Of a stretch of 64,000 nt of DNA, positions 7,649 to 64,000 are shown in pieces. The stretch lies in sequence record OR805295.1; one strand, 5' to 3'. Numbering within the stretch: the first letter of the stretch is position 1; each line of letters begins with the position of its first letter. Below the pieces are notes generated by a model, which made no database searches, was not told the origin of the DNA, and saw nothing but the letters and a program-made list of their open reading frames with translations. The translations under genes were made by a program, and so were the position numbers.

Positions 7649-7653
7649 ACAAT

Positions 7654-42870: not shown

Positions 42871-42889
42871 GAGCAGATATTCTCTTATT

Positions 42890-42973: not shown

Positions 42974-42980
42974 TATTGCA

Positions 42981-43092
42981 AATAAGACTAATTCTTATTT
43001 GCGTTTGTAATTTCATTTGTTATTGTAAATAAGACTAATTCGTATTTGCATTTGCAACGAAAAAGAATATGCAAATAATAACTAATCTTATT
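42981..43092. promoter_or_regulatory. Three Fur-box-like 19-mers
   Basis: AATAAGACTAATTCTTATT, AATAAGACTAATTCGTATT, AATAATAACTAATCTTATT. Confidence 0.65.
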
Positions 43093-43267
43093 TGCATTTG
43101 CACTGCCTATTATATGGATTGGTAGCATACTTGGAAATGGATAGTAAATAAGTAGTTGATTTGTTTATAAATTTTAATTCTATATCGTACTGATTGACCT
43201 TGCTATATATAGCTCGCGCGCGTATACAAGATGGTAAAAAATAATTTAAAAATATTTTAAAAAATGC

Positions 43268-43391
43268 TTGACTTTCCATTACTACGACCTTAAAGTGCGA
43301 ACTGTAGACGCAGTGTGTAGAGCGCTACATAGTAAGCAACGCAGAAAGTAAACAAAAAATGCTTGACGCAATGCAAACTAGGCTCTACACT
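43268..43391 (+). promoter_or_regulatory. Two tandem sigma70 promoters
   Basis: TTGACT-17-TAAAGT and TTGACG-17-TACACT, each with A-tract UP element. Confidence 0.85.
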
Positions 43392-43474
43392 GTATACAAG
43401 CTTAAGGGGTAGGTGCCCCGAAAGTGTAGTAAGTAAACAACATAATCCTTCCATCAGCTACAGAGGTATACAAC

Positions 43475-44179
43475 ATGTCCGTACATATCACTCGTCAACG
43501 TACCGACAAACAACACGTCCTGGCACTGGCAATCAACGGCGTGGTCATCGGCCAGACTATGGCCACTTACACCACCCCGAGCAAGCGCACCTGGTCGGCG
43601 ACCGCCGAAGTCGAACTGGCAGACGGCACAGTCGTACAGTTCGAGCAGAAAGAAGTGTTCAGCGCGATCCGCATCACCCGCGAAATCGAGCAGGCGCTCG
43701 ACGGCAAGGAACTGGCGGCCAAGTACACCCCGGAACCGAAAGTTCCCGGGCAGAAGGGTCCGAAACCGCTCACCGACGAAAGCCGGCTCAGCAACGCGAT
43801 CGCGATCGTCAAGGCGGCCATCACCCACACCGGCTTCGACGAAGCTACCCTGGTGTTCGACGGGGTCGACAAGGCCAACTTCGAGCAGAACAGCACTTCC
43901 GTCGGCAACAAGCTGCGTCGCCTGGGCTTCGTCTTCGAACTCGGCGCCGGCAAGGCGAACAGCGGCAAGGGCTTCCTGATCAACCGCAAAGCGCAGGCCG
44001 AGGCAGAAGCTGCCGAACGCAAGGCCAAGCGCGATGCCGAGAAGAAGGAACGCGAAGAAAAAGCAGCGGCTGCCAAGCGCGAAGCTGACGAACGCAAGGC
44101 CAAGCGTGAAGCCGAACGCGCCGAAAAGGTCGCTGAAAAGAACGCAGCGATCGCTGGCGCAGCGCAGGAAAGCAAGTAA
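43475..44179 (+). CDS. Early protein with Ala/Lys/Glu-rich tail; paralog of 61748
   Basis: INGVVIGQ...FSAIRI domain; GC-rich codons; AGAGG RBS. Confidence 0.9.
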   Translation: MSVHITRQRTDKQHVLALAINGVVIGQTMATYTTPSKRTWSATAEVELADGTVVQFEQKEVFSAIRITREIEQALDGKELAAKYTPEPKVPGQKGPKPLTDESRLSNAIAIVKAAITHTGFDEATLVFDGVDKANFEQNSTSVGNKLRRLGFVFELGAGKANSGKGFLINRKAQAEAEAAERKAKRDAEKKEREEKAAAAKREADERKAKREAERAEKVAEKNAAIAGAAQESK

Positions 44180-44194
44180 TTGCCCAACTGCGCC

Positions 44195-44223
44195 GAAAGG
44201 GGGAGCTATTGCTCCCCCTTTCT
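44195..44223. terminator. Intrinsic terminator
   Basis: GAAAGGGGGAGC-tatt-GCTCCCCCTTTTC. Confidence 0.85.
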
Positions 44224-45158
44224 TCATGACCACACAATCTGTATACTACTATGTCTTTAACTATATTTTCTATATCAGCTAATTTGTATACAATAATTTG
44301 GTATTCTGCGCAAGTGACACAATGCTGTTATATAGACATAATAACACGCGACACTAATATTTTTATAACCTATCCATTTTATAATAACATATTTGTATCT
44401 AAAATTAGTTCTAATACAACACTTTAAGGAAAATATGAACACTATATTAGAGATAAGTAGTGGAATAAGAAATGACTATATAACAGTCAATAATTTTACA
44501 TATGACTACTATCTAGAGGTAAACACACCTGCGTTTTCTTTAATGATAATTATTCCGACAGTTCCTATATTAGACAATACTTGCATTACTTTTATAAAAA
44601 AGTATTAATATGAATATATTCTTTATATCAAACGGTCTATCTAATATAATATATCACAAAGATAATTTGATACAACATGATATACATATGATAGATATTG
44701 AGATTAATAATTCTACTGTTATTTGGCTTACATATTCTTTCAATATTCCTAAGGTATCATTTAAATATATTATCTAATTCATTTTCTTATTGTATGAATT
44801 GCAATTGCAAATTACTCTTATTTGTAAATGCATATAAACAATCAGTTGCTATTAAAAGTATTTGCTGTTAATATATTATATAACAGTGCAATTGATATTT
44901 TAAAATACAGTGTGCAATACATCTTACATGTATTAAAATTTGTGTGTTACTTGTTTTGCATTAATGATTAATATACCTCTCATACAGTACAAAACTCATA
45001 CTATAAACAATTTGTTCGGGCGATCGTTCTCAAAATGTATACAAGTGCGAGATGACAATCTAATTTTACTTGTTAGTTTTTATATAGAAGGTTCTAAATA
45101 TAGAAAATTTGTATATAACAACCAATGCCTTGCCAATGCCTTGAAGGGATTTTAGTAT

Positions 45159-47131
45159 ATGCAAACAACAATCGTTAATGCCCTAAAATCTATTAATGTA
45201 AAGTATTCGGATATATTTTACACAAATGGTAATTTGTGTAATACCGTTACAATACGAAATATTCGCAAAAACGGTAAATTAGATTCGGCAGAACAAATTA
45301 ATGTAGAATCAGTTGTGAGCAATTATTTGATTCAAAAAGATTTAAATTTGCCCTTTTCTATTCAATGGGCAAATAATGATTGCTGTGAAGAGTATACTAC
45401 ACTTATTCTCTTCTTCAGAAAATAGTGTATGATTAGATTAAAAAGATATGTTCAATTGCATAGCATATACAGATTGTCTTACTATGCGCACAACATACAT
45501 TTTAGCAAAACAAAGAAGATAATGCTTTACGTAGGAAACGCAGGTCCCGTACCCGTAACATGACAGTATATAGCGTTAAAATGTGCATTTTTTGCACGAT
45601 TTTGCGGGGTATGCGTTACAAGCAATACACACATACTGCTTTTAAAATGCATGCTTACATGCGCTTTGTAGGGGGTTTAAAACATGCTTAAATTAGTTAC
45701 CACTGTGCTATACAACGTCTGTGTAGCTTCGTTGATAATGATTGTGTTTGTATGTGGTATAAATTTAGTAATGTATATAGATAACAATACTGACAATAAT
45801 CCAGTTGTTATCTTTATTTCCCTTCTATCGGTTATTTGGGGCGTTGCGCGGTTAAGCTATATGTTTGTTACTATCCAATTTCAGTCCAAGAAATAAAAGT
45901 ATTGGTAACATATGATAGATAAAAACGGAAATACAGAAGACTTTGATTTTGATGATGCATGCACTATAACTGACCTGCCTGTTCCTCTTCAGCAAAAAAT
46001 ACAATCATATAAATTAAATAAAATATTGGTTATGGTTGCAATCCTTAAATATTCGAATATAAAACAAGAAATTGGATGTTTCGCTATCATATGGGATCAT
46101 ATAATAAAAATAACGGTTGAAATAAAATGCAATCCGTATGCAGAAACACACATACTCATGCATGCGCATGTATCTTCTAATTCCGATTCATGCACTCATA
46201 GCGTATTGCTGAATTACAGAAACAAATATTTACCCACTAATTATTATAATTAATATGGAAGATATTCTTAAAATTGCTAAACTAATCGGGTACGTAAACA
46301 TACATGCAAATAAACATTTTCGGTATGTTTTTAACAAAGATATGGAACATGTATGTGTTAGTGCTAAGAGTAGGACAAGTATAAACGGAATAAAATACCT
46401 TTATGTAGTAATGAATATATATTATATATATTGCCAGCAAGAAAGTGTTGCCGTTATATTAAACGAAGTAAACACCGATGAAATGCCTGTATTAGATAAT
46501 CTTTATGCTAAACTTAATGATTTAGTTACACATAAATCTATTATAAAATTTAAATATACAGAAATAACACAAGAACAAATAGATTTGTTGAATAATAGTG
46601 AAAGATATATAGTATATTTTGACGACTTTATTTTAGAATACGGAATAGCTTCGTTTTATTAATTTGAGGAATATATGAAAAAACAAACAGGATTTACAGA
46701 TTGGCCATTGATTAGTTTGGGTACAATTATTATCTTGTGTGTATGGGTATTAATTCTACAATACACAGAAATAAATGTACTAGAAGAAAAATGTAACAAA
46801 GTGGGTGGTATTTTTAATAACACCGTTTGCATACGGTCAGATGCAGTTATTAATTTAGATAAGGTAAAATAAAATGCCAAAACTTTACGTTAACAAAAAA
46901 CATGATACCATTTATCTTCAATTAGATCATTTCTCATCTAATACTGTATCTCCAATTAATTATAACGAAGATGTAGAATATGTAATTGATAGGATCCGTA
47001 GTCTGCACAAATCCGGCTTCGGATTTAGTCATATGAATACTCTACAAGAATATCTTACGGCAAGAACAGAGCAGGATAAGAAGTTTAAGCTTAAAGTAGA
47101 AGACTTCGAAGTAGTATCATTTAAGATTTAA
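45159..47131 (+). other. Run of small hypothetical genes (45159, 45684, 45912, 46255, 46675, 46874)
   Basis: Closely packed co-directional ORFs; two with hydrophobic helices. Confidence 0.65.
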
Positions 47132-47152
47132 AATTATACATAATCAAAGTAT

Positions 47153-47181
47153 TTGACATTTGATGTGTATAATAGTATAAT
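47153..47181 (+). promoter_or_regulatory. Consensus sigma70 promoter driving an ORF-less region
   Basis: TTGACA-17-TATAAT. Confidence 0.92.
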
Positions 47182-47187
47182 TTGTTC

Positions 47188-47900
47188 ATGCTGTCGTAAC
47201 AGCTACTTTGTTCCATTCACAAGCAGCTCTGTTCCATTATTGGATATTGGTAGTAGAAACTATCCCCATCGTGCCCACAGTATTGTTCTGTTAGAGACAG
47301 ATTAAAACATACAAAAGTGGGTTATTTAAATTATGATTTTGGGTGCTGAAGTATAGTCGTTAGACAAGGATATGTCTAATGTTGCAAAGGACTATGCGAA
47401 ACGTATTATATATCTTATCCGATATTAGATATGTAATAAAAGGATGAAGCTCTGGTAGAAACAGAGTGTAATTCTTGCTTGTATTTCACACGGATATACA
47501 AAAGAATATACACACCAACTTCAGCATTGATGTAAATTTTCTAGCATAGGTATATAACATCGATGTTCCGGGATTCATTGGAAACAATGAGAGAATGATG
47601 TAATCTGAGGAAAAAGGTCCCCGCCTCGTCCATATTACGAAATGGTTTTGAGTACTTATGCCCTCGTCCTATATTGGCATATGGGTTTTATATTTCTCCC
47701 GTAATTACGGGAGAATATAATTTCCTGAACCTACTTGGAAATGGACGCTTCTGCTGTGCGAAGCACAGCATCTAAGGGCCTTCACCCTTACCGCTAAGAG
47801 CAAGAGCAAAAGCAATATAATTACAAATAAGAATTAATTATTGTTTAGTTTTATCGTAATGAATATGAAGATAAAAACTAAACAATAATTCACATGTAGC
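47188..47900 (+). ncRNA. Candidate ~700 nt structured ncRNA
   Basis: No ORF >=60 aa on either strand; many stems including 47344-52/47518-26. Confidence 0.65.
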
Positions 47901-48047
47901 GTTAGCTACTGTGAATATCTACTATAGTATTAACCATATATGTATACAAGGGCATAATATGACTATTACTTGTTGACAATATGATATGTGTGTTACACTG
48001 CATAAATCAAATGTACATTACAATGTTTTGATTATTAGGAACATACT

Positions 48048-48632
48048 ATGTCATTTTCTTTGACTGCTGCTATTAATCGATACACTAGTCTAATAGAAGA
48101 AAATTTCAAAATAAATTATCTGAGGCAGTTTGAGTCAGGATATATCTCGTATAAATTACTAAGAAATAAAGCACTCCTGCATACCGAAATATCACATGGA
48201 CTTGATTACATAAAGGTAATTATTTCTTATACATATGTAGAAAATAATGTCGAATTAGATATCAAATCATCTATTGTACATTCGTATATTTCTACTACTG
48301 ATTGCTCTAAATTTAAAGTAGGAGATATAAAAACGTTTTACGATTCAGTTCCTCGTGGAAATGTTTTTAATATTAAAGAGAATACTCAAGTTAGCTGGGC
48401 AACAGCTAATATTGGAATTCACGAGAATCCGTTTAATCTTAATTATATTTCGAACAATAAGTATATTCGATTAGAAACAGGAGATATATTTGTTTGTATT
48501 AATGATAGTATGGTAAATGAACTACAAGAACATATGCATGTTCATTCTATATGTACTAACAAAACAAAGAAGTTTTATGTAAGAGAAATTGATTTAAATA
48601 TGCTACATTACAAAAAACACATTATGGAATAA
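48048..48632 (+). CDS. Hypothetical protein
   Basis: 194 aa, AGGA RBS. Confidence 0.75.
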   Translation: MSFSLTAAINRYTSLIEENFKINYLRQFESGYISYKLLRNKALLHTEISHGLDYIKVIISYTYVENNVELDIKSSIVHSYISTTDCSKFKVGDIKTFYDSVPRGNVFNIKENTQVSWATANIGIHENPFNLNYISNNKYIRLETGDIFVCINDSMVNELQEHMHVHSICTNKTKKFYVREIDLNMLHYKKHIME

Positions 48633-48635
48633 AGA

Positions 48636-49184
48636 ATGAACTACAAAGCATTAGAAGTATTTTATTTCTTTCTAGAACATTACAAGGTAAATCCAGTCGC
48701 CGACTTGGAATTTAAATTCGAACCCTCAGGTAGTGATGATCAATCTAAGCGCAAGTCATCACTGTCGTTTGTTAAACGTATTGGTGTTCTTACTCCCTCA
48801 TTCAACGAATTATACGAAGTTCAGAATCGATTCATGTCAGATCTTCGAGAAATGAATGTAGTATATAAGATAGGATTTAATTATAATGCATTCAACGTAT
48901 TAGCACCTTTGTATGCAAGATATGAAAAGAATGTAAAAGAATTTCGTCGACTTTTAAAGAAATACTCAAATTTCAACGAAGTAACAGAATATTACAAAAA
49001 AGCCAACAACATGTTACCGGACAATGTATACGAAACAATGAAGGAAGATTTTTCATTGTTTAACGACGTTACTACAAAGAGGTTATCTGAAATAAAACTT
49101 TGTTATCCTAATTGGCAAGTATGGGATTCTGAACATCCCAACTGGGAAACAATAAATCAACTTTATAAGAATGCAAAGAAATAA
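48636..49184 (+). CDS. Hypothetical protein
   Basis: 182 aa, followed by terminator near 49195. Confidence 0.8.
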   Translation: MNYKALEVFYFFLEHYKVNPVADLEFKFEPSGSDDQSKRKSSLSFVKRIGVLTPSFNELYEVQNRFMSDLREMNVVYKIGFNYNAFNVLAPLYARYEKNVKEFRRLLKKYSNFNEVTEYYKKANNMLPDNVYETMKEDFSLFNDVTTKRLSEIKLCYPNWQVWDSEHPNWETINQLYKNAKK

Positions 49185-49342
49185 TGCATATTTAGAAAGG
49201 GAATTATAATTCCCTTTCTTTTTGGATCTATATTAGCAAATGCTAATTAATCTTATTTGCACAAATTTAATCCTATTGTGTTTTCTATTTTGAAGTGCTA
49301 CATTACATGTAGTTGCATAAAACTATACACAGGAGAAATGAT

Positions 49343-49891
49343 ATGTGGGATATCAAAGATGGGGATGATATCGAAGTCGAAGCAGTTATGGATGAACGAA
49401 GCTATGAGTGGACCGGCAAGTTACGTATCATCCAATATCGGACCCTTCAATCGGCTCAGTGGCGTGTTATTATCAATATAGTAGAATTTTGGAGTCATTC
49501 TACTGAAAGTATACTGAAAGAACTTGGTATAGAAGCTAAACACATTACTAAAGGATATGCCACACTTAGTATGGTTCGTTTCCCGGATGTTGATTACCTG
49601 TTTAGTGTAACACCCGATAATGCAGATTATGTAACTGTTAACCACAGTGCAGTAGATATTTCTGACAGTTGGTTTGTTGCAAAAAACATAAAAGCAGTTA
49701 TGTATCATTTGGGATCTGAAATCCAGATCACTCCGTGGTTTGTGCGTAAAGATAGTAGCGAGACAAATTTCAATTGTATTGATCGATTAGTAGCTCTAGT
49801 AAAAGAGAATACTGATGTTGACACGTATCAGTACATCAAGGTAGGTTGTCCTGAGGACAAGTCATTTTACTTTGCGTGGATAGACAAATAA
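49343..49891 (+). CDS. Hypothetical protein
   Basis: ATG 7 nt after AGGAG. Confidence 0.75.
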   Translation: MWDIKDGDDIEVEAVMDERSYEWTGKLRIIQYRTLQSAQWRVIINIVEFWSHSTESILKELGIEAKHITKGYATLSMVRFPDVDYLFSVTPDNADYVTVNHSAVDISDSWFVAKNIKAVMYHLGSEIQITPWFVRKDSSETNFNCIDRLVALVKENTDVDTYQYIKVGCPEDKSFYFAWIDK

Positions 49892-49980
49892 TTCGTTTGC
49901 TATACGTACTAATACGTTGTATACTGTTAGTACGCATAGTAGAAGTAACACATAACGTTTTGATTTAATGGAGCCTTAAC

Positions 49981-52287
49981 ATGAGAGAAGAGTTTGAAGC
50001 CGCGATCTTCGCGGAAGTGAATAAACAGCGCGCCGCCGAAGGTGAATTTGTCCTTCAGCATCCAGAGGGGCTATTTGCCCGCGATGACGATGGTTCCTAC
50101 TTGATCCGCTGGGTCAAGAGCGCATGGTGGGCCTGGAAAGCCAGTCGTGTGGCACTGACGCCCCGGACGCCCGATGTGTGCAGCGAGTGCAATGACACCG
50201 GGAAAGTCTATGACGAAAGCGGCGCCGGTCCGTGGAGTTGCTACGCCTGTACCGATAACCCGGAGGTGATCGGCTACGCAAACGGCGATGAGTTGGACAA
50301 CATGCTGGATGACCGCACTGCTGTTCTCTCTCCAAGGAAGACCAGTTTTCACACCGTGCCAGTGTATCGACTGATCCACACCCAAAACAAAAGTTTTCAA
50401 TAAAATCGATATGGAACTGGTCCTTCAAGAAGCCGAAATTGAGGTAGTGAAATGAGCAGACTGACCGCTGAACAAGCCCGTGACATAGCGCGAGCGAAAG
50501 ACGATGTCGATGCCATCCTCAACGACATCGCCAAGGCAGCCGCAGAAGGAAAGTACGTGTACACTACCCGCGCCTATGGGTTCGGTACAGGCGGCGGACG
50601 GCGCAGCGACGCGATCCTCAAAGTGTTGCGTAGCCTCGGCTACGACTGTGCGGTGCATGCTGAGGGACGCCAGTCTGTTGACCTGTGGCTTGAAGTGAAA
50701 TGGGGAGACAAGCCATGACTAACAACCCCGGAGATTCAAAAATGATCGTAGAAAACGCCAAGCAAGCCGCCGAAGACTTCAAAACTTCCATGGCTAAGAT
50801 TTTTCCGAATTACATCGCCAGGGCGTCGGTTTCCGATAACCTTGGTCCGGCGATGACAATTTCGTTTGCGAATGTCGGTTGCGCTTCCGAAGCCCCTAAC
50901 AGCATTCTGATAAATGCGAGCGGTTACATGCGCTTTATGATGCATTTGTGTGACAATTGCGGGAATGTATTGCCAGAAGGTTCGCCGGTAGAAATTGAGC
51001 TGCTAATGTGGTCTATCCCCTATCGTTCGGAAGTAATCAAGTTCCGCAAGATCAAGGGCAAGACACCAGCCGAAGCTATGCAAAAGCTAGTCAAGTGGTT
51101 TGAAAAAACGCCGAAGCTATCCGGGGTCTGTAATGGTCTCCACGTAGGACACGCAGAATGAACATTGTGTTGGACAAATTGCTGTTTGGCGGTTTCATCG
51201 ACCAGCACCGCAATGAACTTGCCCAGCAACAACTGAATCGGTTGTTTGCCAAGTACGGTGAGCCGAAGATTGGTATCACACGGGCATGCTTTCTATCTAA
51301 GCATTACGTCCTGAAGTTCCCGATTAATGACAGGGGTGAGCGGTGCAACGATTGGGAAGGTAGCTGTTCCGGCAGCTATTTGGCACGCGGACGCTGGCTA
51401 GAAATCGGAGGCTTCATTTGCGTCATGCAAGAGCGTTTGGTTGAAGTGGATTGGAAGAACAACACCCATGCAAACTTTCCTGATTGGGTAGGCAGCATAG
51501 ATTGTGGTCAAGTCGGCTACGATAAACATGGCGTTCTGAAAGCGTATGACTTCGGGTGAAGCATGACCATCAATTTGTTTGTTGTCAACATAAAGAACGA
51601 ACCTATCCCAACCGACCACAAGTCGATACTCCGCTATCTTGGCCTTAGCCTGCACACGCAAGGCCGTCGTGTATCTGCCAAATTCAGCAGCGGTAAGTTG
51701 AAGCTGAACAACTACAACATCGAATTTTTTCACATGGCGGAGATGATTCCATGACCGACACCAACAAAATAAAAAAGCTAGCAAAACTGGACGAGATCGA
51801 CAGGCTCAGGGCAGAGCGAGACGCCGCCCTGGCCAGGGTCGTAGAGCTGGAACGCGGCAAGGTCTACGTCGAAGCCCGGCAATGCGACGAGTGCCAGCAT
51901 AGCGGGATCAACGATTCCGCCACGGGCGTGGCTGCCTGCCACGAATGCGACTGGACCGGACCAGAGCCAGAAGAGGATAAGTGCCCCGGTTGCCAGAGGG
52001 AGAATTGCATGGCCGCAGCCTGCCCGCAGTGTGGTGCCCGATATGTCCTTGTTGCCAGCGAAGAGATAGCCGCCCCTGTAGCCCAGGCTCAGCACAGCGT
52101 ACCAGAGGAATGGCGCGACATGCTGGCCGAGCTGCAATGGCATTACGAGCCGTATGACGATCACCACCACACGCCCCAGGGCTTTTACTGCCCGCGTTGT
52201 GGGAGAGAACAGGACGAAGGACACAAGCCGGGATGCAAGATAGCCGAGTTGCTCGCCACTGTCGACCTCAAAGAAGACAAGAAATAA
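49981..52287 (+). other. GC-rich gene island (49981, 50452, 50715, 51158, 51563, 51751)
   Basis: Abrupt rise in GC; overlapping co-directional ORFs; 51751 has several CxxC motifs. Confidence 0.85.
51158..51559 (+). CDS. Minimal protein-kinase-like protein
   Basis: GITR...YVLKFP...NDWE...SIDCGQVG...YDFG. Confidence 0.45.
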   Translation: MNIVLDKLLFGGFIDQHRNELAQQQLNRLFAKYGEPKIGITRACFLSKHYVLKFPINDRGERCNDWEGSCSGSYLARGRWLEIGGFICVMQERLVEVDWKNNTHANFPDWVGSIDCGQVGYDKHGVLKAYDFG

Positions 52288-52328
52288 AATTCTAAATTAC
52301 TCGAACAAACATAATAGGAGCAGCATAC

Positions 52329-52559
52329 ATGAGCCTCAAATATAACGGATATGTCTTTAACATTAGTATCCTTGGCCAAAACGAAGCTATCAGTGAATAC
52401 GCCTATCCTACCGATGATCCTGAAAGTGATAAAAAGAAAGCTTTTTTGGCTGCAATGACAAAATTCGTCGAATCGGATGATTTCGAGAAATTTACTAATC
52501 AAATGTATAACAATTTCTCGATTAATGTTCAAGCACTAGTTTCTACGGCTACGGAGTAA
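52329..52559 (+). CDS. Hypothetical protein
   Basis: AGGAG RBS, 76 aa. Confidence 0.75.
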   Translation: MSLKYNGYVFNISILGQNEAISEYAYPTDDPESDKKKAFLAAMTKFVESDDFEKFTNQMYNNFSINVQALVSTATE

Positions 52560-52938: not shown

Positions 52939-53179
52939 CATTTACAATATATCTATAAAAGAATATATTAGTAACACAATTGTTAAATTGCAAACACTAA
53001 TTAATCTTATTTGCATTTGCTATCTTGTATAATAGAAACGACTTCTAAACATGGATATGAGATGGAAAACTTAGATAGGATCTCTGTTACAAATTTTTGA
53101 GTTAAAATACATAGTAGTTTTGCTATTATGTGTTTATAGAAGTTTAATAACAGAACTAAAACATAAAGGATTGTCTGTT

Positions 53180-54831
53180 ATGAAAAGTTACGCAAAGTTT
53201 TATGTAGGAACAAACATTTATGATGCCGAAGTGCCGGATTTAGACATAAACATGCCAGATGCAGAACTTTTCGAAGTAGCATTGCATCAAATGGCAGTAC
53301 AGTGGTCTAGCACCGCCGGGCATCCGCATCACAAGGATGCAATGCGTAAAGACGGCAAGGTAGCCCGGAGTAAAGAACGGGTGTATATTCGCGGCAACGG
53401 TTGGTCCGTTTCGTTACATAGTCCCGAATTTGTAGAAAAACACTCGGCATACCTTGCCGCAGCGGAGTGGAAACTACTAACAGATTTGCTTGTATTTGAC
53501 ACCTGCTGGAACGCTAATTAGTAATTCTCTCTACACAGGAGAACGGCAATGAATACTATCAGTGTAAGAAATATGCGTTATATTGTACGTGGTTTTGTTA
53601 CTCATGCAATTGCCCGGGGTTATTCAGTTTCCGTTTATGAAGGGGGTGATTGGGCGATCGAGAAGAGTACTTCTGTAAAAGATATTATGAATTCTATCAT
53701 GTCTACTGACAGTGATACATTCTGTATTTATAATGCAGAGAAAGTGAAGGTAGGTCATGTATATTGCATTTATTGCAATAGTGATTACGAAGTTATTGCA
53801 GATTACACCGATTCACCTCTTATGCAATCGATTCTCGTCGAAGCTCTACGCAGAGCAAATCGAATAGAAGAACTGAGCTGAGAAAAAGAAGCAGGAATTA
53901 TTCCTGCTTCTTTTGTATGTTACAAGTTAAACAAGATTAATTTGCATTTGCTATGTAATAATATTTTCTATTGAATTAAATATTACATGTGTTACTATAT
54001 GCACAATGCTGTTAAACAAAGCGATAAATTAATAGCTATGGCAAATAAATTACATATCATCTGTGCAAAATGTGGTAGCACTCTTATAAACATAAAAATA
54101 CCAAAAGTATGTGCAGATGATCCATTAAATGTAGTATATTTTTCGTGCGAAAACTGTAAGGAACTTACAGGCATATACGAATGGACAGAAACAAATAATC
54201 GCAAAGTAGTTGACGATAGGTAAGAAGTAAATGGAAGCATATACAGATTATCCTATCCTAATGATCGGCGATGTTCCGCATGAAGAAGCACCTATAAGAA
54301 AAATAATTATAAAAGGTTATGATTTTAAATATATCTGGGCAGTATACCATTATATGGATTTAATTCCTATAAGGGTTCAGATAAAACGCTGTTATGTGTA
54401 CGAAACTCCGGGTAGAGTAGGTTATGTAAAATCTATTAGAGAAGAAGTATTAAGAAAACGCAAAAAGAAACAACGTGACATATATGAATACGATACATAT
54501 CAAGATGAAGACGATTTTTGGAAAGGAATGTATTAAAATGCATAATACTCGTATTGTTGTTCGACTCAATGTTATCACTCCTATTTCAACTGCTAACGGC
54601 GTTGTAGTTGATTCAGTAGTCCGCGGGCATCGAGCAGGCATTAAGCAAGGCAAACAAATGTATCATGTTTATTCTATTCAAACAGGCGAGTATCTCGGTT
54701 TGAAATCAGAAGACGACGTAAGTGAAATTAAACCGTCTTCGTATGAAGAATTTCTTACTCCGAGAACACTTACTTCAAACGAAGTAGAACAAGTTAAATC
54801 TTCTTTCGAATGGTACGAAGCTAACATTTGA
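53180..54831 (+). other. Early-type small genes (53180, 53549, 53987 CxxC ribbon, 54231, 54538)
   Basis: RBS-bearing ORFs separated by hairpin terminators near 53884 and 54835. Confidence 0.75.
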
Positions 54832-55066
54832 TATAAAGGGGGAATAATTCCCCCTTTATTTTTCTTTTATAAACATAAATAATTCGCATTTGCACCGAAG
54901 ATGCTTTATAACGCATAAATTTACATAGCTAATACATACATATTGCTAACGTTAAAAAGCGCATTATATAGCTTATAATTGCATATTGTGCAATGCATTT
55001 GTTGGTGTTATATTAAACATGCGCAACAATCAACTATACAAAAACATTTATTATGGAGATACAACA

Positions 55067-55740: not shown

Positions 55741-55799
55741 ATCACAAAAAGTTTTAAAATTCAGTTTACAGCATGCATAGTTTTACGTATTATAAACAC

Positions 55800-56065
55800 A
55801 CAAAGCAATACAGCATAACGCATTGTAAGCAACACTAAACGGGAGACACCGTCCCGCAAGCAGCCCGCCCGCGATGTTCGCGGGCTGCGGCAAACAGGTG
55901 TACAAGGTCTAGTAACGTGGAAGGCGCAGCATACCTTTCCTTAAATCGGAAATCGGTCAATGACGTACCTGCCCCTGGACACTGCTAGACCTTGCTGCTA
56001 CAGGCGGGACAGCTACAAAGGTACACTGTATGTATCTATGCTTTACCCCGCTTTGTAGCAGGTCT
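55800..56065 (+). ncRNA. Candidate ~260 nt GC-rich structured ncRNA
   Basis: TTTACA-17-TATTAT promoter; stems 55860-88, 55903-12/55985-94, 55996-56008/56047-60. Confidence 0.6.
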
Positions 56066-56341
56066 TAAAACGGTCTACTGGCATATGCCTTAGTGCTAGT
56101 AGGAATCATTAACCTAAAACTATTATATGCTTCCTGGAGGTGAAGAGTATGCCGCCGCAGCATTAAATATACATTATGATGATGATAATTATGAATGCCG
56201 AAACACCGCTTCGATTCGTTTAAAAGACAGATGTCTGAATCGAATGTTTTTGGGCAAAAAGGTCCCTTAAATGGGATTTTTTTGCGGCTGCTAACTAGCA
56301 AACGCGAATTAATCTTATTTGCAATTTAAGAAAAATACCAG

Positions 56342-56370
56342 TTGACTGTAGCTTGCTAACATAGTACATT
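56342..56370 (+). promoter_or_regulatory. sigma70 promoter
   Basis: TTGACT-17-TACATT, 22 bp downstream of Fur-box-like element. Confidence 0.8.
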
Positions 56371-56399
56371 TAACTCATAAATCCGCAGGAGTAGCAGTT

Positions 56400-58018
56400 A
56401 TGTCGCTGAAAAAGAAACTTTTAAATTCTGTGCAGATTAAATATTTCGGCAACATTTATACTTACATTTATGATGCCGTTTATGACGTTATTTATTTCGA
56501 TAACCAGCAAATGTCTTATGCTGAATTTGAAGAGGCAGTAGACTGTAAGCTAGGAGAAGTTCTGTGAATGAATATGTCGATACACACAGAGCTAAAAGAA
56601 TACTAATAATTTCTTCTATATGTTTTTTTGTAACTGGCATTCTGGTAGGATACAGCCTAGCATCGAACTCTGAGTCTGCTTCGTTATATATGCAGTATAA
56701 AGAACTTGTAAAGTCTTGCGAAGCAGAATTGCCAAGAAATGAAAATTGTCAAGTAATCGTATATGCTATACCAACACCCGAAGTAGAAGAAGAGAAACTA
56801 GAAATACAAACAATTCTCAGAGGGGTCGAAATAAAATGAGCGTATACTGTAATTGCATAGCATGCGGTGGAGATGATCCGTATGCTGTATGTGAAAATGT
56901 GTTAATGGATATCCAAAAGCACAAATATAATACTGGTCCCAGCTGGGGGCTGGTAGTTGCGGCAGTATTGTGTTTGGTAGGAATGGGATTAGCAGGTAAC
57001 GCAGCACTATCTGATAAAAAAGAAACACCGTGCGAAACTACACAACAAAAACAAGAGGTGTATAATGAGTAACAAAACAACAGACATGCTGGTAGATGAA
57101 TTTCTGTGCGAGCGTGCATCTTTTTCTCCGTTTAGCGAAGGTGTTCATGCAGCTAAACTAGGGCAGAAATATACAGACTGTCCGTATACCAAAAACGAGC
57201 CGTATGAACGTAACGAATGGATTCGAGGACATCAAATGTGGCATGATTATTCTGTTCAACAATACAAATAATATTCAGAGGATATTATGAAGAAACTATC
57301 TATGTGCGATTTTGCCAAATGGAAGGCAAACTATTATAGCACTAATAAATCCTGTCAGCCACTCCGTCTAGGACAAGCATTTATTAACGAATTTTCCGAA
57401 CAAGGTGATATGCCTCAGCCAAATCTATATTATGAAGAAGATAATGCAACTGCTGAGCTTATCATTCTAGAAAAATACATTATATACTAAGGAAGTAGTA
57501 ATGTATCTTGCACACCTATTCGCTTTGGTCCCGTCTATGTTTGCAGTATTGATTAATGCTACCTTTATTAAATACGGTTTGGGACCTGCTGCTATAATAG
57601 TATTTATGGCCTTAGTTGTAACTGTAACAGGAATTGGGTGTATAATAGATATGATGCGTGCATTGTCTGAAGTAGACAATATTATTGATAGATAGTATTT
57701 ATACGCATAAGAGAACTTATGAAACTCAATGAAGTTACTACAATTTCCGATCTAGACAATATTCCTGTCACTGACAAATTTATAGTTGTCGGCGAAGATA
57801 TGGTAGGTCTTGCTTTTATCGATAACGATGGAAAGTTAAATGATGGATTCTTTTTTGAGTGTACTTATACTCAGAATAAGGTACAAATATTTAAAGCTGT
57901 TCAACATTTGAAAAAACAAGTAGATGAATTAAATAATTGTAATAAAGAGAAAGTTATAGCACATATCATGCGAGCTCCTGAGTTTGCATATGTTTGGGTA
58001 TACTTTGAACAAAAATAA
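56400..58018 (+). other. Operon of small hypothetical genes (56400, 56564, 56836, 57065, 57287, 57501, 57719)
   Basis: Overlapping starts and stops, RBS motifs. Confidence 0.75.
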
Positions 58019-58299
58019 TAGTTCTATATTTTTGATATATGCAAACGCAAATAATTATAATTTGCAGAATCTGTTACAAACTTTCTGTTTATATAAAATA
58101 CAATCATGCTATAATAGTTTATAATAAAAATGTAAGCATATAGCACCAAAAGAACAAAGATGAAGTTCATTCTTTGTCTAAAGATTAAGTTTGCTGAGAA
58201 TTTTGATAAGAAACTTCAACTGCTAGATATTATATCAATAGTGCATTTATCATGCATTGAACAGAAAAGAAGTACTCTTTTATCTACGAGGAAAAGCAA

Positions 58300-60387
58300 A
58301 TGAAATACAAAATCATTCTTCAAAACCGTAGCAATGGTGTTGTCGCTGAATTTTCGGTAGATAACGAAATCAATCCCGAGATCATGGATACTTCTATTAT
58401 CGTTCATGAAGGGACGTCGTATATGTATACCGGCTCGGGTGGTTCTTACTACGATACCATTTATTTTAGTGAAATATATAAGACCACTAACACGACAGAC
58501 TTGTCGTTGCTATAACAGAAAACGCTTTACAATAGCTCTAAATGTGCTATTATGTAGTTGTACATAAAACAACGCAGGAGATTATATCATGCGTAGCACA
58601 CTCGGAGTAGAACATGCATCGAGAGAAATTCTTTCTGCATGGGTCGATGTAATGCAGCAACTCAACTGTGAGCATTTCTATAGCGAACTGAAAGACAATG
58701 CAGTTCGCTTAGATTTACAGGAATATATGTATACTGAACGTCTCGTTCAGTATTATACAGATCTTCCAGTCACTAATGCTGGTTGATGCCTTCGCCGGGC
58801 GTGAACTACATTTATTAGGAAAGGGGTTTTAAGCCCCTTTCCTTTTGAATGTTAAGTGTAAGTGCAAATTAATCTTATTTACTTGTTACAATTTAGTTCT
58901 TGAATTCACACATAATAGTATGTATAGTTTTAATATATAAGATACCAACATGCGAGGTTGTAAAAATGAAACTTCATAATATGAATGGTAATATTTTTAT
59001 TCGGTTTGAAGTAGATACTTCGTCGGATAATTTTGTAGAAAAAGTTTACGAAGAAATTATGCAGCTTCCTGCAAAATTGTATTTCGAGAAGATAGAACGT
59101 AGAACTTGGTTCTGTAGCTTTTACACAGGCTACGACGAATTGGTGGAATTCGTCAATGAAATAAAAGACAGAGTTAGTTCAGAAGGTGTTTTCTTTGACA
59201 GGCCATTGCAGCTAACTCTTATCAATTCGGGCGGGGTAGAAGTAAATATTTCCGATATAGAACCGGATCTTCACTATCTCTTTGATAACGATATTACAAC
59301 TACAAAACTTATCTCTATGGAAGGATCCTGCAATATGGTAGATTTGCTCATGTGCGAATGGGTACCTATTAGCATTCGAACTTCTATTGCTAAGGCATTT
59401 ACTGACAAATTTTTATAATAAAATACCTGTTGACGCATATAGCAATATGCGCAATAATATGCACGAAAGCAAGAACAGATCCAAATAACCTTTTTATAAG
59501 AGATTATATTATGTCTAAGTATCTTTCTTTTAGCGTAAACGTAGACATGGACAACACCGGTCTGTTGAAATGGTTGCGTCCTACCACCGGTCGGCTGGAT
59601 GGATTCGAAGAGAGTGTTAAAAATTTCGTTTCTTCTTTCCGCTCAATCGAGTCGAGCCCTACGGTGTTTCAAGTTTACGATGATGATAACCAGCCGTTGC
59701 AAGTAAGCAACATGAGCTGCTTCTTCCGATACTTTCCGGTGTACGGTATGTGCCTTGCACCGGGTTCGATGGTCAGGGAACAATATCGTCGGGAGATCCT
59801 CGACTATACTACTGACGAGTTCTGTTCATTCAGTAACTACTTCAGTGACGGCAAGGCCATCCGCGGCGGGGCAGTCTTGTGGTGGGATGTAGAGAAAGAC
59901 TTGGTATGGTCTGTTAGTCCCGAATTGATTCGCCTCGTATATGCCCGCTTGCAAAGTGATATGGACATCGGGTGGTATCATCTCGGGCAAGAAGTTATGG
60001 CTGTAGTTCCCCTTCGTTCTTATCCCAACGATGTTGCCCGATGGAAATATGTACAAGGTAATATCTGCGGCATCGACGATCAAGTGAGCATTCGCAGCAA
60101 TGTCGACGGTCGAGTCACCCGGCTTAATTGGGAATACATCGTTACCCAAGGGGGATAATATGGGCGGTCTTGCTAATATAGTTGCATGCATAGCTTCTAT
60201 TGTTGCAATTGTTACTGGAAATATCTGGTATTTTATCGCACTGTTGCTATGCACAGCATTTATGTCGCCCGAACGAAAAGGATCATTAATTGATGTATTT
60301 TCGGTCATTGTCGGGATTGGTGCTATATTTAACGGAGACATTGTATGGGGCATAGTGTTCATAGCATTAGTGATAATAGTTAAATAG
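58300..60387 (+). other. Early-type cassettes (58300, 58589, 58966, 59511, 60160)
   Basis: Promoters near 58526 and 59430 (TTGACG-17-AATAAT); terminators near 58818 and 60388. Confidence 0.7.
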
Positions 60388-60430
60388 AAAGGAAGGGGTT
60401 TAACCCCCTTCCTTTTATTGTAGGTGTTAA

Positions 60431-60580
60431 ATGTCATCAATTTTTTATCTTAGCAAATCAACAGAATACATAGTAATTTTAAACAATACAAGAATAAGGT
60501 TAAGTACAGCGAAATATTCTATAGGATATGTATCACTAGAAACACCTCGTCGCACATTTTACTGGACACTTTTTAAATGA
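60431..60580 (+). CDS. Outlying single-unit ILxLQ family micro-ORF
   Basis: MSSIFYLSKSTEYIVI, 49 aa. Confidence 0.55.
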   Translation: MSSIFYLSKSTEYIVILNNTRIRLSTAKYSIGYVSLETPRRTFYWTLFK

Positions 60581-61169
60581 AATACAATAATCGTATCTAA
60601 ATAGCTACCTACCTTTATATCAAAAACCATTCTATGAAATATATTTCCCAAATCATATTACAAAAGTTATATTTGAATTTTGGATTCTTATCTCAACCTT
60701 GCATTGCAATATAAAATGCGAATATGAGTGTGCTGTATGTGTTTGCATACGCATGTACATACGCATAAACGTATTAAGAAATACAATTTATTTTATCCTA
60801 TACGATTATCTTTAATACCTATATGTTGTTTGATAATAAAAGTATAATAAGTAAAAGACATTATCCATTGTATAATGGTTTTAATATATTTCGCTGTAGT
60901 GTCGGATGTATATATTTTTCATATGATAAAATGTCATTTATTCACGACATATTCATGCAAACCATTTCGTTGTTCCTTACGACGTTATTATTGTTTTTAC
61001 TTATAACTCCTTTATATTATATAGGATTGAAAAATCCAGTCAATATAACTACATTTGTTTCGTGTTTAATAATAACTATTCTTATAACAAGTTATTATTT
61101 TATGTCAGTTTTGACTTATATATTCTGTATTACCGTTCAGTCAATAATTTATAAAAGAAAGAAATAATT

Positions 61170-61280
61170 TAGTTTCTTTTTCATTATCAATATCTTTTTC
61201 TTTTTCAATATCTTTTTCTTTATCTTTTTCTTTTTCAATATCTTTTTCTTTATCTTTTTCTTTATCTTTATCTTTTATCA
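61170..61280. repeat. Pyrimidine-rich low-complexity repeat
   Basis: TCTTTTTCTTT and CAATATCTTTTTC units; minus strand reads KDKEKDIEKE. Confidence 0.85.
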
Positions 61281-61291
61281 TTGCAAATACA

Positions 61292-61396
61292 AATAATAAT
61301 TATTCTTATTTGCATTTAGTGATGTAAATAATTCTTATTTGTAATTGCGATTAATTCTTATTTGCTACAATAGATAGAATAAGAATAATTCACATT
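61292..61396. promoter_or_regulatory. Four tandem Fur-box-like 19-mers
   Basis: AATAATAATTATTCTTATT, GATGTAAATAATTCTTATT, ATTGCGATTAATTCTTATT, AATAAGAATAATTCACATT. Confidence 0.7.
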
Positions 61397-61686
61397 TGCA
61401 ATGCCGCTAAAAGCGCTGTAAGCGCTGTATGTTGCGTAGTAGTGCTAAGCAATGCGTTAGTACAGCTACGCGCACAAACGCTGTTATGCGCGCTTGTAGC
61501 GCGTTTTAGGGCCCATGCGCATGCGTATACCTGTAGCTTTACATAGTAAAATGCAGAAAAGACGTCGTCTATTAACGTGCCTGTCTTAATAGAAATATAC
61601 AATTGTACAATACCTGCGAAATCCTACACACTACAGACATGCAAACAAGCAATGTGCTTGCAAGCATAAAAGTTTTTAAAAAGTAG

Positions 61687-61715
61687 TAGACACAGTGTAG
61701 CATCCCTAGTAAGCT
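61687..61715 (+). promoter_or_regulatory. sigma70 promoter
   Basis: TAGACA-17-TAAGCT. Confidence 0.7.
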
Positions 61716-61747
61716 ACACACATAAACAACACAACGGAGTACAAGCT

Positions 61748-62215
61748 ATGTCTAATGTAAGCATCCCTGCAGTAACGGTAGAGAACATCGGCACCCTGCG
61801 CATCGTGCGCACCGCTAACAAGGAGGTCGGAAGTGTGCTCGACCTAAAAGTTAACGGGGTAGTAGTAGGGCAAGCTTTCCCGCTCTACAGCACAAAAACC
61901 CAGCGTAGCTGGAACGCGAGCATGCACGCTACCGTTAACGGTGTAGAGGTGCAGTTTGCACAGGAAGGCGTGTTCAGTGCAATCCGCATTGCACGGGCGT
62001 TCGAGGATGCAGTAAAGTATGCCGTTAGCAACGGCGAACAAGGGCAACCCCTCCCCGCGCCGGCGGCGCAGACCGATGCCCCGGCAACGGCAGAAGCGCA
62101 AGCAGAAGCCCCGGCGGCGCAGACCGAGGATGCGCCGGAGACCCCGGCGGCCGAAGCTAAGCCCGCCCGCAAAGGCGGCAGCAAAGGCAGCAGCAAAGGC
62201 GGCAGCAAAAAGTAA
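61748..62215 (+). CDS. Early protein with Ala/Pro/Lys-rich tail; paralog of 43475
   Basis: VNGVVVGQ...FSAIRI domain. Confidence 0.9.
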   Translation: MSNVSIPAVTVENIGTLRIVRTANKEVGSVLDLKVNGVVVGQAFPLYSTKTQRSWNASMHATVNGVEVQFAQEGVFSAIRIARAFEDAVKYAVSNGEQGQPLPAPAAQTDAPATAEAQAEAPAAQTEDAPETPAAEAKPARKGGSKGSSKGGSKK

Positions 62216-62228
62216 GCGCTGCTAACAC

Positions 62229-62254
62229 AGGAAAGGGGCAACTGCCCCTTTCCT
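62229..62254. terminator. Intrinsic terminator
   Basis: AGGAAAGGGGC-aact-GCCCCTTTCCT; exact reverse complement at 62947-62972. Confidence 0.85.
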
Positions 62255-62383
62255 TTTATGTCCTAGTTGTAAATGCAAATTAATCTTATTTGCATTTGCA
62301 CAAGTCAATCTCCTGTTGCATTACTGCGGCAAGATGTTAGTATGTGCTTGGCAGTAACACATAACTAGCAGGAGCAACAGACA

Positions 62384-63480
62384 ATGGCTAAAGTATTGCA
62401 TGTTAACAGCATCGGCAACATCGCCGAAGTGTTTACATCTGTAGACCTCGATAGCGCCTTGTTGCACGCAATCAAGCGCTGTGCAATGATGGGCAAGGTT
62501 AATGTTGTTGGTCCCAACGCTCCTGTGTTTGCTAGCCACTACGACGCACTGACAGCGTACGACGTGCAGTGGCGCCTTGTTCCACCAGGCTGCGGCGTTA
62601 CTTTGTACGTCATCGCCGAGGACAACAACTAAGGAGAGACACAATGAATCTCGTACATCTGTGGATCAACGGGCGTGTTGTGACTGCCCGCAAGGTTGTA
62701 AGTAAACACACTGTCCGCAATCCGAACAGTCCGATTGATATCGAGACTATCGACGTTGTTCGACTGCGTCTGCCCCGTGGTGTTCGTGCTAGCAGTTGGG
62801 CACTCCGTAAGGCAGTGTACCAGCTCATGGAGCAAAGCTGTAGCTGCTCGAGTGACTGTTGTGGACACTGGTTCGGCGGCGCACGCAAGATCTACATTAA
62901 AGGCAGAGACGTCAGTGTCGTTGCCGGGTACCAGCGCAATTACTAAAGGAAAGGGGCAGTTGCCCCCTTTCCTTTTATCCATTAATGTGCAAACGCGAAT
63001 TATTCTTATTTGCACAGGACAGTGAGATGCAAACAAGAGGCATTCTTGATGCAGTCGGGTGATAAGAATTGTTCACAAAAAGAAAAAGCTTGCGTTATGC
63101 TACACAGGTGCTAGTATGTGTATTGCAGTACCTATAAACATTAATAGCAGGATAAGAAAATGGTTGACTTTAAAGGTTTTAACTGGGACGCACTAGTCCC
63201 GGAGGACAACGTTTCCACAGTTTCCATTAAAAATCACTACGAGGAACTCCTACAAAGTTTTGTTGACAACGGCATAGACTATGTGTTAGTCCGGCTGTCC
63301 CAGGAACTGCCGCACTACGAGGATTCAGATTATCCCTGCTACAAATTGGTTGACAAGTATGCAGGATGGATAGTAGGCTGGGACTACTACGGATTTGTTG
63401 TGGAACGCATGGACACGCACCTTTTCTTTGACAACAGCACTGCAAAAGGTGTAATGGACTTCCTGGAAGCTAACGGCTAG
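62384..63480 (+). other. Early-type genes 62384-62632, 62644-62946, 63160-63480
   Basis: AGGAG/AGGA RBS, promoters TTGCAT-16-TAGTAT and TTGCGT-16-TAGTAT, terminators. Confidence 0.8.
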
Positions 63481-63710
63481 CACAAAAAGGAAGGGGCGCA
63501 AGCCCTTTTCTTTTGTCTGCAATTTCTGTGCAAATAAGAACTATTACAGTTGTGGTAAAAGCACAATGCAAATAAGACGCATTCTTGATTAGGCCTGATA
63601 ATAAGTTCTTATTAACAACAAAGAAACTGAATAAGAATAATTCTGAAAAAATAACCCTGCGGCGTAACACAAAGGGCTTGCAAATTGCAAGCCCTTTTTA
63701 ATATGCATTT

Positions 63711-63778
63711 GTTCTAAGATTAGTTCTTATTTGCAATGATAATATTCCCGCCTTACAAATAAGAACTAATCTTAGAAC
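63711..63778. repeat. Perfect 23-bp inverted repeat of Fur-box-like elements
   Basis: GTTCTAAGATTAGTTCTTATTTG-22-CAAATAAGAACTAATCTTAGAAC. Confidence 0.9.
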
Positions 63779-64000
63779 AAATATTCACTTGATTTTTCTC
63801 CCAATATAGTGTATGTCTATATTAGATAAGATTAAGTCTTGTTTGCTTGTTACACTTTATATGTTGCAATGCTAAGGCAATGACAATATTATATGTACAG
63901 CAACACAAAACAGGAGATATAACATGTCAGCAGAATTGAAGCGGTTGTTAGAGATTTTTCCAACCTTTAAATCATTCATTTATGCTGAAGGGGCATATGG

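Follow-up and report, generated by a model that had tools for sequence, protein, structure and literature searches.

A repeated 27-bp palindrome in the early region of Pseudomonas phage Paride: a putative operator within terminator-promoter cassettes

The repeated palindrome of the early region

The stretch of DNA described here (the window, 64,000 nucleotides) corresponds to positions 124,001-188,000 of Pseudomonas phage Paride, OR805295.1 (100% identity), and its right part carries a 27-bp palindrome that recurs between the early genes. Paride and its relatives make up the genus Wroclawvirus, the sole genus of the Arenbergviridae; ten relatives, PA5oct, MIJ3 and Callisto among them, share 96.7-97.5% identity with Paride over the 8 kb compared. 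Window position 42,000 is equivalent to PA5oct position 7,650, which places the block carrying the palindrome in the left part of the 39,080-bp direct terminal repeat of PA5oct. Production of PA5oct is stopped by rifampicin, so its transcription needs the host RNA polymerase, early transcription comes almost entirely from the Watson strand, and the majority of the repeat genes gp34-gp105 are highly transcribed early genes (PMC7318152). An initial annotation, made from the letters of the window alone, had assigned the sites to the early region, and this agrees with PA5oct, where the counterparts of the palindrome lie at 8,667-35,463, inside the terminal repeat and among the early genes gp34-gp105 (PMC7318152). 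The motif is absent from descriptions in the searchable literature: the PA5oct omics paper gives TTGAC/TATAATA promoters and stem-loop terminators only, with no palindromic element (PMC7318152), and a full-text search for the spelling of the motif found no phage paper.

The initial annotation described a 19-bp element with two 9-bp arms around one base (9-1-9), often flanked by GCA/TGC. The flanks are indeed conserved, but the true unit is longer, a 27-bp 13-1-13 quasi-palindrome with the consensus TGCAAATaaGAAT-T-AaTCTTATTTGCA. Information is highest for G/C at +/-11 and +/-12 and for C at +4, with A/T runs between these positions. All early genes run in the + orientation. Read this way, the motif has a near-universal right half, (A/T)TCTTATTTGCA, and a left half that keeps TGCAAA with an inner part that is often CGCG, TGCA or similar. 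Where the two orientations differ by more than 5 bits, 17 sites score better on the + strand and 8 on the - strand.

A 30-nt position weight matrix (PWM), iterated from the strongest copies, was scanned over 92 kb of Paride, with coordinates beyond the end of the window continued into the adjoining Paride sequence (L002); genome counts outside 124-216 kb come from pattern searches. The matrix finds 28 sites of 17.7-38.7 bits at window positions 42,975-69,640, a block of 26.7 kb, and 19 of them are inside the window. Among the 24 coordinates listed initially, 18 are full sites (19.8-38.7 bits), three mark one half of a site (63533, 63713 and 63758) and three are weak (47826, 63061 and 63630). 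One full site, at 63567-63593, had been missed.

The motif is genuine and not a product of chance, and its copies are restricted to the early block of the terminal repeat. A single weak outlier at 19,617 (17.0 bits) is at chance level and the rest of the 92 kb scores below 10 bits throughout; the earlier statement that no copy precedes 42.9 kb holds save for this match. First-order Markov simulations of the 92 kb (n=20) gave 0.2 matches of at least 15 bits each, with a maximum of 16.8 bits. Simple pattern searches returned 17 matches in the window against 2.5 expected, and 24 in L002 against 1.0 expected. Exact matches to the 9-mer TCTTATTTG number 17 in the window, all at or after 42,979, and five in the remaining ~260 kb of the 287-kb genome. 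Of the 27 intergenic gaps that separate + strand genes by 60 nt or more, 20 contain a copy, in keeping with the initial description of most gaps as occupied, and no site centre falls in a coding sequence (CDS) of at least 49 aa though genes account for 71% of the block. PA5oct has 27 copies and Callisto has 26, in the same places. The description of the sites as a regulatory-looking network stands. Scans of IMG/VR returned no match with TGCAAAYNNNAATTAWTCTTATTTGCA; with AATTAWTCTTATTTGCA they returned 59 contigs with one match each, which is chance level, and no PA5oct-like contig.

Cassette geometry and the gp038-like genes

The copies occupy a characteristic position between terminators and promoters. 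About 12 of the 28 start 8-20 nt 3' of a stem-loop that is rich in G+C and carries a T tract (typical form AGGAAAGGGG-loop-CCCCTTTCCTTTT). Downstream of the motif lie sigma70-like promoters (TTGnAT, 16-17 nt, TAnTAT) at a preferred distance: counted from the motif centre, the +30 to +39 bin contains the -35 starts of seven promoter-like matches (at least 7 bits), where ~0.84 per bin would be expected, and in 12 of the 28 copies the highest-ranked promoter within 190 nt begins at +28 to +37. The centre of the palindrome is found at ~-63 to -72 (~-67) relative to the predicted start sites. In some 12 of the 28 copies the motif is flanked on both sides, by a terminator 8-20 nt upstream and, 15-23 nt downstream, by a promoter. 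No sequence similarity exists among the linkers that join motif to promoter, which indicates that the motif and its spacing are conserved and have not just been copied with recent duplication.

The palindrome was also considered as a promoter in its own right and rejected on reading the sequence, as it has no -10 element at the right spacing for sigma70, no GG at -24 for sigma54 and no match to the T4-late promoter TATAAATA. The putative operator is missing from some early promoters. A perfect sigma70 consensus promoter, TTGACA-17-TATAAT, is found at 47153-47181 with no motif copy near it, and two AAAAAATGCTTGAC(T/G) promoters are found at 43266 and 43361, ahead of gp038.

The arrangement resembles the PeSLs (promoter-early stem-loops), composite stem-loop/early-promoter units that take part in modular shuffling in the hyperplastic regions of T4-like phages (PMC2839356, PMC4122927). 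PeSL stem-loops have the form A3-4G3-loop-C3T3-4, and their nt-1-type promoters read TTGYVH-N17-TAWWAT (PMC4122927, PMC2839356). As in PeSLs, the repeated intergenic unit of Paride is an A/G-rich stem-loop terminator followed by a sigma70-type early promoter (TTGnAT-N16/17-TAnTAT, close to the nt-1 type), and the units are located in a variable, ORFan-rich and early-expressed region (all in the block matching gp34-gp105). Indels between relatives may end in the units too, to judge from several junctions. The Paride units differ in having the 27-bp palindrome, their best-conserved part, between the stem-loop and the promoter; the description of PeSLs includes no such operator (PMC2839356, PMC4122927). 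The palindrome can also be found with no terminator and in groups of 3-5, and Paride belongs to the Arenbergviridae (Wroclawvirus) and is not T4-like.

Two clusters are present in the window, three copies at 42977-43096 and four at 61288-61400, each directly 3' of ~95 bp of pyrimidine-rich 12-nt tandem repeats. The repeat units 5' of clusters 1 and 2 are CTTATTCACTTC and TTTCTTTATCTT, in 6-9 copies, and the PA5oct annotation of an 'extensin-like protein' over the first tandem repeat is probably spurious. The genes 3' of the two clusters, Paride_0306 and Paride_0369, are paralogues (48% identity over 61 aa, E = 3e-16). A third paralogue, the equivalent of PA5oct gp098, is encoded at L002 26142-26603 (+ strand, 153 aa), a locus where PA5oct annotates a + strand CDS. 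The Paride record has an opposite-strand open reading frame (ORF), Paride_0391, at L002 26043-26603 (Paride 192,043-192,603), which is probably a mis-call. The genes are preceded by three copies (Paride_0306), four copies (Paride_0369) and one and a half to two copies (third paralogue). All three proteins consist of an N-terminal domain of ~75 aa, a low-complexity linker and a Lys-rich tail, and gp038, the PA5oct equivalent of Paride_0306, has been detected in PA5oct virions.

When 1.84 billion representative proteins were searched exhaustively with a profile, this family had only 14 members; a word-indexed protein search found the PA5oct orthologue of gp038 alone. Seven distinct foreign metagenomic loci that encode family members were inspected. 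Judged from these sequences, motif and gene family co-occur in five of the seven, and the network exists outside Wroclawvirus. L195 (7.2 kb) has 13 matches against 1.3 expected, with a group of five ahead of the gene and a single one in every intergenic gap that follows; its gap cassettes (GGGGCAACTGCCCC-T tract, motif, TTGCAT-16-TAGTAT, leader) are nearly superimposable on Paride 62229-62383. L194 has a terminator, a pyrimidine-rich stretch and four clustered copies (e.g. GCGAATAAGAATAATTCTTATTCGC) ~470 nt before the gene, L193 has four copies of 13-28 bits, L196 has five half-site matches against 0.27 expected, and L189 has two TGCAAATAAGAA half-sites and one palindrome in 345 nt of sequence. 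A pyrimidine-rich stretch similar to the Paride repeats lies ahead of clusters or palindromes in L191, L194 and L195. A leader element, TAATAGAnA-N5-6-CAATTGTACA, is found in Paride at ~61586-61614, 3' of the motif cluster and 5' of the short paralogue gene, and is kept in the diverged relatives L189 (~214-238), L193 (~1176-1200) and L194 (~2831-2856). The ~350-nt GC-rich leader at 61400-61747 contains no ORF and may be a non-coding RNA.

A putative operator network and its alternatives

The motif is interpreted here, with moderate confidence, as the operator network of a regulon-wide and probably phage-encoded regulator, carried in PeSL-like cassettes. The 27-bp palindrome would be a protein-binding operator in a cassette of intrinsic terminator, operator, sigma70-type promoter and 5' leader, and in the early block of the long terminal repeat the majority of transcription units would begin with such a cassette. 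Each copy, ~67 bp upstream of the transcription start, would be occupied by a dimeric protein that recognises its sequence. This protein would coordinate the whole early regulon, either through shut-off after the early phase or through a boost to the host RNA polymerase. The promoters have reasonable -35 and -10 elements and expression is strong at 5 min, which suggests that they fire unaided and would favour later shut-off or insulation; class I activators, for their part, also act from upstream positions near -67. As the main repeat of the block, the copies may additionally act as junctions for the gain and loss of gene cassettes.

Dispersed operator networks of one regulator include the C1 operators of phage P1 and the KorB OB sites of IncP plasmids. 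Like them, the Paride motif is a short intergenic site present in one to two dozen copies over tens of kb, at varying distances from promoters, and with multiple copies at the regulator's own gene (in Paride, that of the candidate regulator). The Paride network differs from these systems in that the phage is strictly lytic, the binder is a candidate only, and the sites are inside terminator-promoter cassettes.

The binder would most likely be encoded by the phage. Clusters of operators before a regulator's own genes are the usual autoregulatory layout, making the gp038-like family, with its three paralogues including one virion protein, the best candidate binder. A more specific proposal is that gp038-like proteins, small and with a basic tail, form a new family of sequence-specific regulators governing an early regulon that spans the terminal repeat. 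Their domain of a beta-sheet and a helix would have no counterpart among known DNA-binding folds, the family would bind the Fur-box-like 27-bp palindrome within mobile terminator-promoter cassettes, and one paralogue is carried in the virion; this proposal is tentative and somewhat doubtful. An alternative candidate binder is Paride_0394 (L002 26832-27248), a 'DNA binding protein' (phrog_624, 1.5e-36) encoded between copies 68695 and 69625, for which no Pfam or PDB sequence relative was found. The initial annotation had offered operators of a phage regulator as one of three roles for the sites. That role is the favoured one of the three, but the candidate family lacks a recognisable DNA-binding domain.

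Several points weigh against an operator network of a phage regulator. The 27-bp core and its flanks substitute equally, at 2-3%, between the 97%-identical relatives, so that no purifying selection is visible and the comparison is uninformative at this identity. The spacing between motif and promoter varies by ~9 bp, which is loose for an activator bound to one face of the helix. L191/L192, which encode a gp038 orthologue, have one differently spelled 12-1-12 palindrome, AAATGAGATGAG-T-CTCATCTCATTT, and no network (they also have a terminator, a pyrimidine-rich stretch and two TTGAC promoters), and the homologue locus L197 is without the motif. Pfam and NCBIfam searches found no helix-turn-helix, Fur or other DNA-binding family in the candidates or in the 79 early ORFs, which have almost no family matches at all. 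The AlphaFold model of Paride_0369 is a six-stranded sheet with one helix and a disordered tail (model confidence, pLDDT, 70-80), and a Foldseek search with this model returned nothing significant (best E = 0.13, leviviral coat proteins). Finally, the motif stays constant while the family diverges to ~40% identity, which also fits a conserved host protein.

A host DNA-binding protein other than Fur could read the palindrome, with the early promoters plugged into a host regulon. Immediate-early expression cannot rely on phage proteins synthesised after infection, the half-site ATTCTTATTTGC has stayed constant in relatives with proteins at ~40% identity, as a conserved host reader would predict, and in dormant hosts Paride depends on RpoS and (p)ppGpp (PMC10761892). 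By eye, however, the motif has no likeness to those of Vfr, Anr, LexA, IHF, Fis, Zur, PhhR, CbrB or sigma54. A scan of GTDB genomes for TGCAAATAA-N5-13-TTATTTGCA gave single chance-like matches in AT-rich taxa with no Pseudomonas among the matches listed, and these are uninformative on Pseudomonas. Taken together, a host protein of this kind is unlikely.

The palindrome could instead be chiefly the recombination site of a mobile cassette, acting site-specifically or through short homology, and persist by spreading. Paride, Callisto and PA5oct differ in the early block by insertions and replacements. Of the junctions, those at 63014, 63719 and 64704 coincide with copies, and others are nearby (62231/62343 and 64242). 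A Paride-only segment of 705 bp (63014-63719) extends from the right end of copy 62988-63014 to the right half of 63713-63735. Another of 462 bp (64242-64704), absent in Callisto and PA5oct, ends at a copy centre; it is bounded by identical 34-nt direct repeats, TATGACCATTGATGCAAACTATTCTTATTTGCAC, at L002 22258-22291 and 22683-22716 (window-equivalent 64,258 and 64,683), and has the appearance of a cassette that recombination between motif copies has brought in or removed. In Callisto, two copies adjoining 62281 enclose an additional cassette. The inverted arms resemble recombinase core sites, and PeSLs have been proposed to act by short homology (PMC2839356, PMC4122927). However, in the two relatives compared just ~3-4 of ~14 junctions are within 40 nt of a copy against ~1.2 expected by chance, an association that is suggestive only, and within the 50-52.7 kb island of high GC the junctions bear no relation to copies. 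The core sites dif/pdif, lox and attC have a crossover region of 6-8 bp and a recombinase, whereas the 13-bp arms of the Paride motif enclose 1 unpaired base and no recombinase family was found in the 79 early ORFs. Recombination also leaves unexplained the fixed promoter distance and the clusters before one gene family. A site that serves mainly for recombination is quite unlikely.

The other two roles proposed initially both have host Fur as the binder, either making the early genes iron-responsive or drawn away by a decoy array so that iron uptake is derepressed. The resemblance to Fur boxes is genuine in overall pattern. The AATGAgAATcATTctCATT variant of the initial annotation is a published Fur-box consensus (Xanthomonas), to which candidate boxes match at 13-17/19 (PMC1790865). 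It is in register with the Bacillus subtilis and Shewanella consensus, and with that of Escherichia coli after a 3-bp shift. The core of the motif is a 9-1-9 AT-rich inverted repeat, AAT-x-A-G-AAT-n-ATT-C-T-x-ATT, and against the Fur consensus AATGAnAATnATTnTCATT in the Xanthomonas register these 19 bp match at a mean of 13.6/18 (range 10-16). In AT-matched 41-nt windows the best Fur match averages 10.0/18 and reaches at least 13 in 2%. The sites are Fur-box-like beyond composition, and scores equal to those of AT-rich background, named at the outset as grounds for refuting Fur, were not what was found. The match counts given for 61378 (16/18) and 62992 (15/18) are also correct. In the E. coli register, GATAATGATAATCATTATC, which is equivalent to the 7-1-7/9-1-9 form AATGAnAATnATTnTCATT, the motif matches at 11.6/19 against 9.95 in AT-rich background; this understates the likeness. 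The likeness is within the span of the Xanthomonas candidate boxes, one of which contains ATAAGAAT (PMC1790865), and Fur tolerates atypical operators (PMC4506495). A decoy would have 27-28 sites in a repeat that is present twice per genome.

The resemblance breaks down at the base on which Fur specificity depends. Arg57 of Fur contacts a conserved guanine and the R57A change abolishes binding (PMC4506495); this guanine is the G of TGA at -6, with the C of TCA at +6 as its mirror. The motif is instead marked by A/T at +/-6: G occurs at -6 in 11 of 27 sites and C at +6 in four, no site has both, and 12 have neither. T at +6, found in 23 of the 28 sites, ranks with the most strongly conserved positions and persists in diverged relatives. 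The palindrome is 4 bp longer on each side than the Fur box, and its conserved TTTGCA/TGCAAA flanks (GCA/TGC at +/-11 to 13) are outside the 19 bp. Classic Fur boxes overlap the -10 and -35 elements (PMC3411052), whereas the motif is upstream of the predicted promoters and does not overlap them, with its centre ~67 nt from the predicted start. A decoy would need no fixed promoter distance, and the motif co-occurs with a phage gene family. The portions of the PA5oct and Paride papers available make no mention of iron, siderophores, Fur or an iron-related host response, which is weak evidence. Since the +/-6 guanine, the flanks and the promoter position all disagree with host Fur, it is very unlikely to be the binder, though its tolerance of atypical operators makes binding in vitro conceivable.

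A nucleic-acid structure, whether a hairpin or cruciform for termination or processing or a signal for ejection, replication or packaging, is highly improbable: the copies are palindromic, close 3' of terminators, within the first-entering terminal repeat and in clusters flanked by tandem repeats, but a 13-bp hairpin imposed on the 28 copies is paired at 71.3% against 73.6% in column shuffles with fewer compensatory double changes, the left arm is often swapped without compensation (TAAG to CGCG or TGCA), Rfam finds no match in 41-64 kb, and 28 dispersed promoter-tied copies are unlike origins or pac sites. A consensus match in both halves without covariation points to the DNA site of a dimeric protein and not to an RNA or DNA hairpin.

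Further features of the early block and implications

The features of the window that concern the cassettes are collected in Table 1.

Table 1. Motif copies, terminators, promoters and associated genes, in window coordinates
Feature	Position	Strand	Score or remark
Motif copy, cluster 1, TGCAAATAAGACTAATTCTTATTTGCG	42977..43003	+	PWM 35.7 bits
Motif copy, cluster 1	43024..43050	+	PWM 35.5 bits
Motif copy, cluster 1	43070..43096	+	PWM 33.5 bits
Motif copy	44800..44826	+	PWM 30.3 bits; predicted -35 at +33 from centre
Motif copy, 15 nt 3' of terminator 49194-49219	49235..49261	+	PWM 36.4 bits
Motif copy	52989..53015	+	PWM 37.2 bits
Motif copy, 3' of terminator ~53888-53910	53926..53952	+	PWM 27.3 bits
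Motif copy, 8 nt 3' of terminator 54833-54859	54868..54894	+	PWM 23.9 bits
Motif copy, 3' of ncRNA002-matching region; promoter 56342-56370	56297..56323	+	PWM 37.1 bits
Motif copy	58040..58066	+	PWM 24.1 bits
Motif copy, 3' of terminator 58821-58840	58857..58883	+	PWM 26.7 bits
Motif copy, cluster 2	61288..61314	+	PWM 32.6 bits
Short-form copy, cluster 2, TGTAAATAATTCTTATTTGTA	61323..61343	+	PWM 21.8 bits; register from alignment
Motif copy, cluster 2	61340..61366	+	PWM 26.1 bits
Motif copy, cluster 2	61374..61400	+	PWM 24.7 bits
Motif copy, complete cassette (terminator 62229-62254, promoter 62316-62343)	62268..62294	+	PWM 36.6 bits; L195 homologous cassettes
Motif copy, 3' of terminator 62951-62970; Callisto indel junction 63014	62988..63014	+	PWM 38.7 bits
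Isolated half-site TGCAAATAAGAAC, 3' of terminator 63489-63509	63529..63541	+	
Motif copy missed by the initial annotation	63567..63593	+	PWM 20.2 bits
Copy with right half alone intact (…TTCTTATTTGCA); Callisto indel junction 63719	63713..63735	+	
Motif copy; promoter TTGCAA-17-TATTAT 63864-63892	63821..63847	+	PWM 19.8 bits
Pyrimidine-rich tandem repeat, period 12, directly 5' of cluster 1	42880..42973	+	
Pyrimidine-rich tandem repeat, period 12, directly 5' of cluster 2	61173..61276	+	
Paralogue 1, Paride_0306, PA5oct gp038 equivalent, virion protein, 3' of cluster 1	43475..44179	+	
Paralogue 2, Paride_0369, 3' of cluster 2	61748..62215	+	
Intrinsic terminator, cassette	49194..49219	+	
Intrinsic terminator, cassette	54833..54859	+	
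Intrinsic terminator, cassette	58821..58840	+	
Intrinsic terminator, cassette	62229..62254	+	
Intrinsic terminator, cassette	62951..62970	+	
Predicted sigma70-type promoter TTGACT-17-TACATT	56342..56370	+	-35 starts +32 from motif centre
Predicted sigma70-type promoter TTGAAT-17-TATAGT	58900..58928	+	-35 starts +30 from motif centre
Predicted sigma70-type promoter TTGCAT-16-TAGTAT	62316..62343	+	-35 starts +35 from motif centre

PA5oct produces two non-coding RNAs, ncRNA001 and ncRNA002, that are highly transcribed throughout infection (PMC7318152). Their counterparts in the window are at 42613-42848 and 55816-56266, and Rfam has no family for either region. Motif cluster 1 comes after the ncRNA001 region, and the copy at 56297-56323 comes after the ncRNA002 terminator. 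GC-rich islands (up to ~53-60% GC in a genome of ~30% GC) are located at 43.4-44.2, 50.0-52.3 and 61.4-63.5 kb, and the one at 50-52.7 kb may have been acquired horizontally. An early ORF at 57065-57271 (+ strand, 68 aa) matches the ribosome modulation factor (RMF) and CrpP fold families (Pfam RMF 2.5e-05; NCBIfam Rmf_CrpP_fam 3.5e-07 and Rmf_like_phage 2.6e-05), the match being placed on this ORF by its sequence signature (…CPY…W..G…), with no separate scan. An RMF/CrpP-like ORF is of note in a phage that replicates on dormant cells.

A strong resemblance to Fur boxes is thus possible in a site whose conservation argues against Fur, which calls for caution in assigning regulons from motifs in AT-rich phage DNA. 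The cassettes described here extend the idea of mobile terminator-promoter units, developed for PeSLs, beyond the T4-like phages and add a third component to it. PA5oct-type phages are candidates for therapy, and Paride replicates on deep-dormant, antibiotic-tolerant P. aeruginosa. The early programme of these phages comprises ~100 uncharacterised terminal-repeat genes transcribed by the host RNA polymerase, and a shared operator would offer an experimental handle on it. If the virion copy of the gp038-like family is injected with the DNA, it would be a virion-delivered transcription factor for the host RNA polymerase. Such a factor, if true, would bear on how Paride starts its programme in dormant cells.

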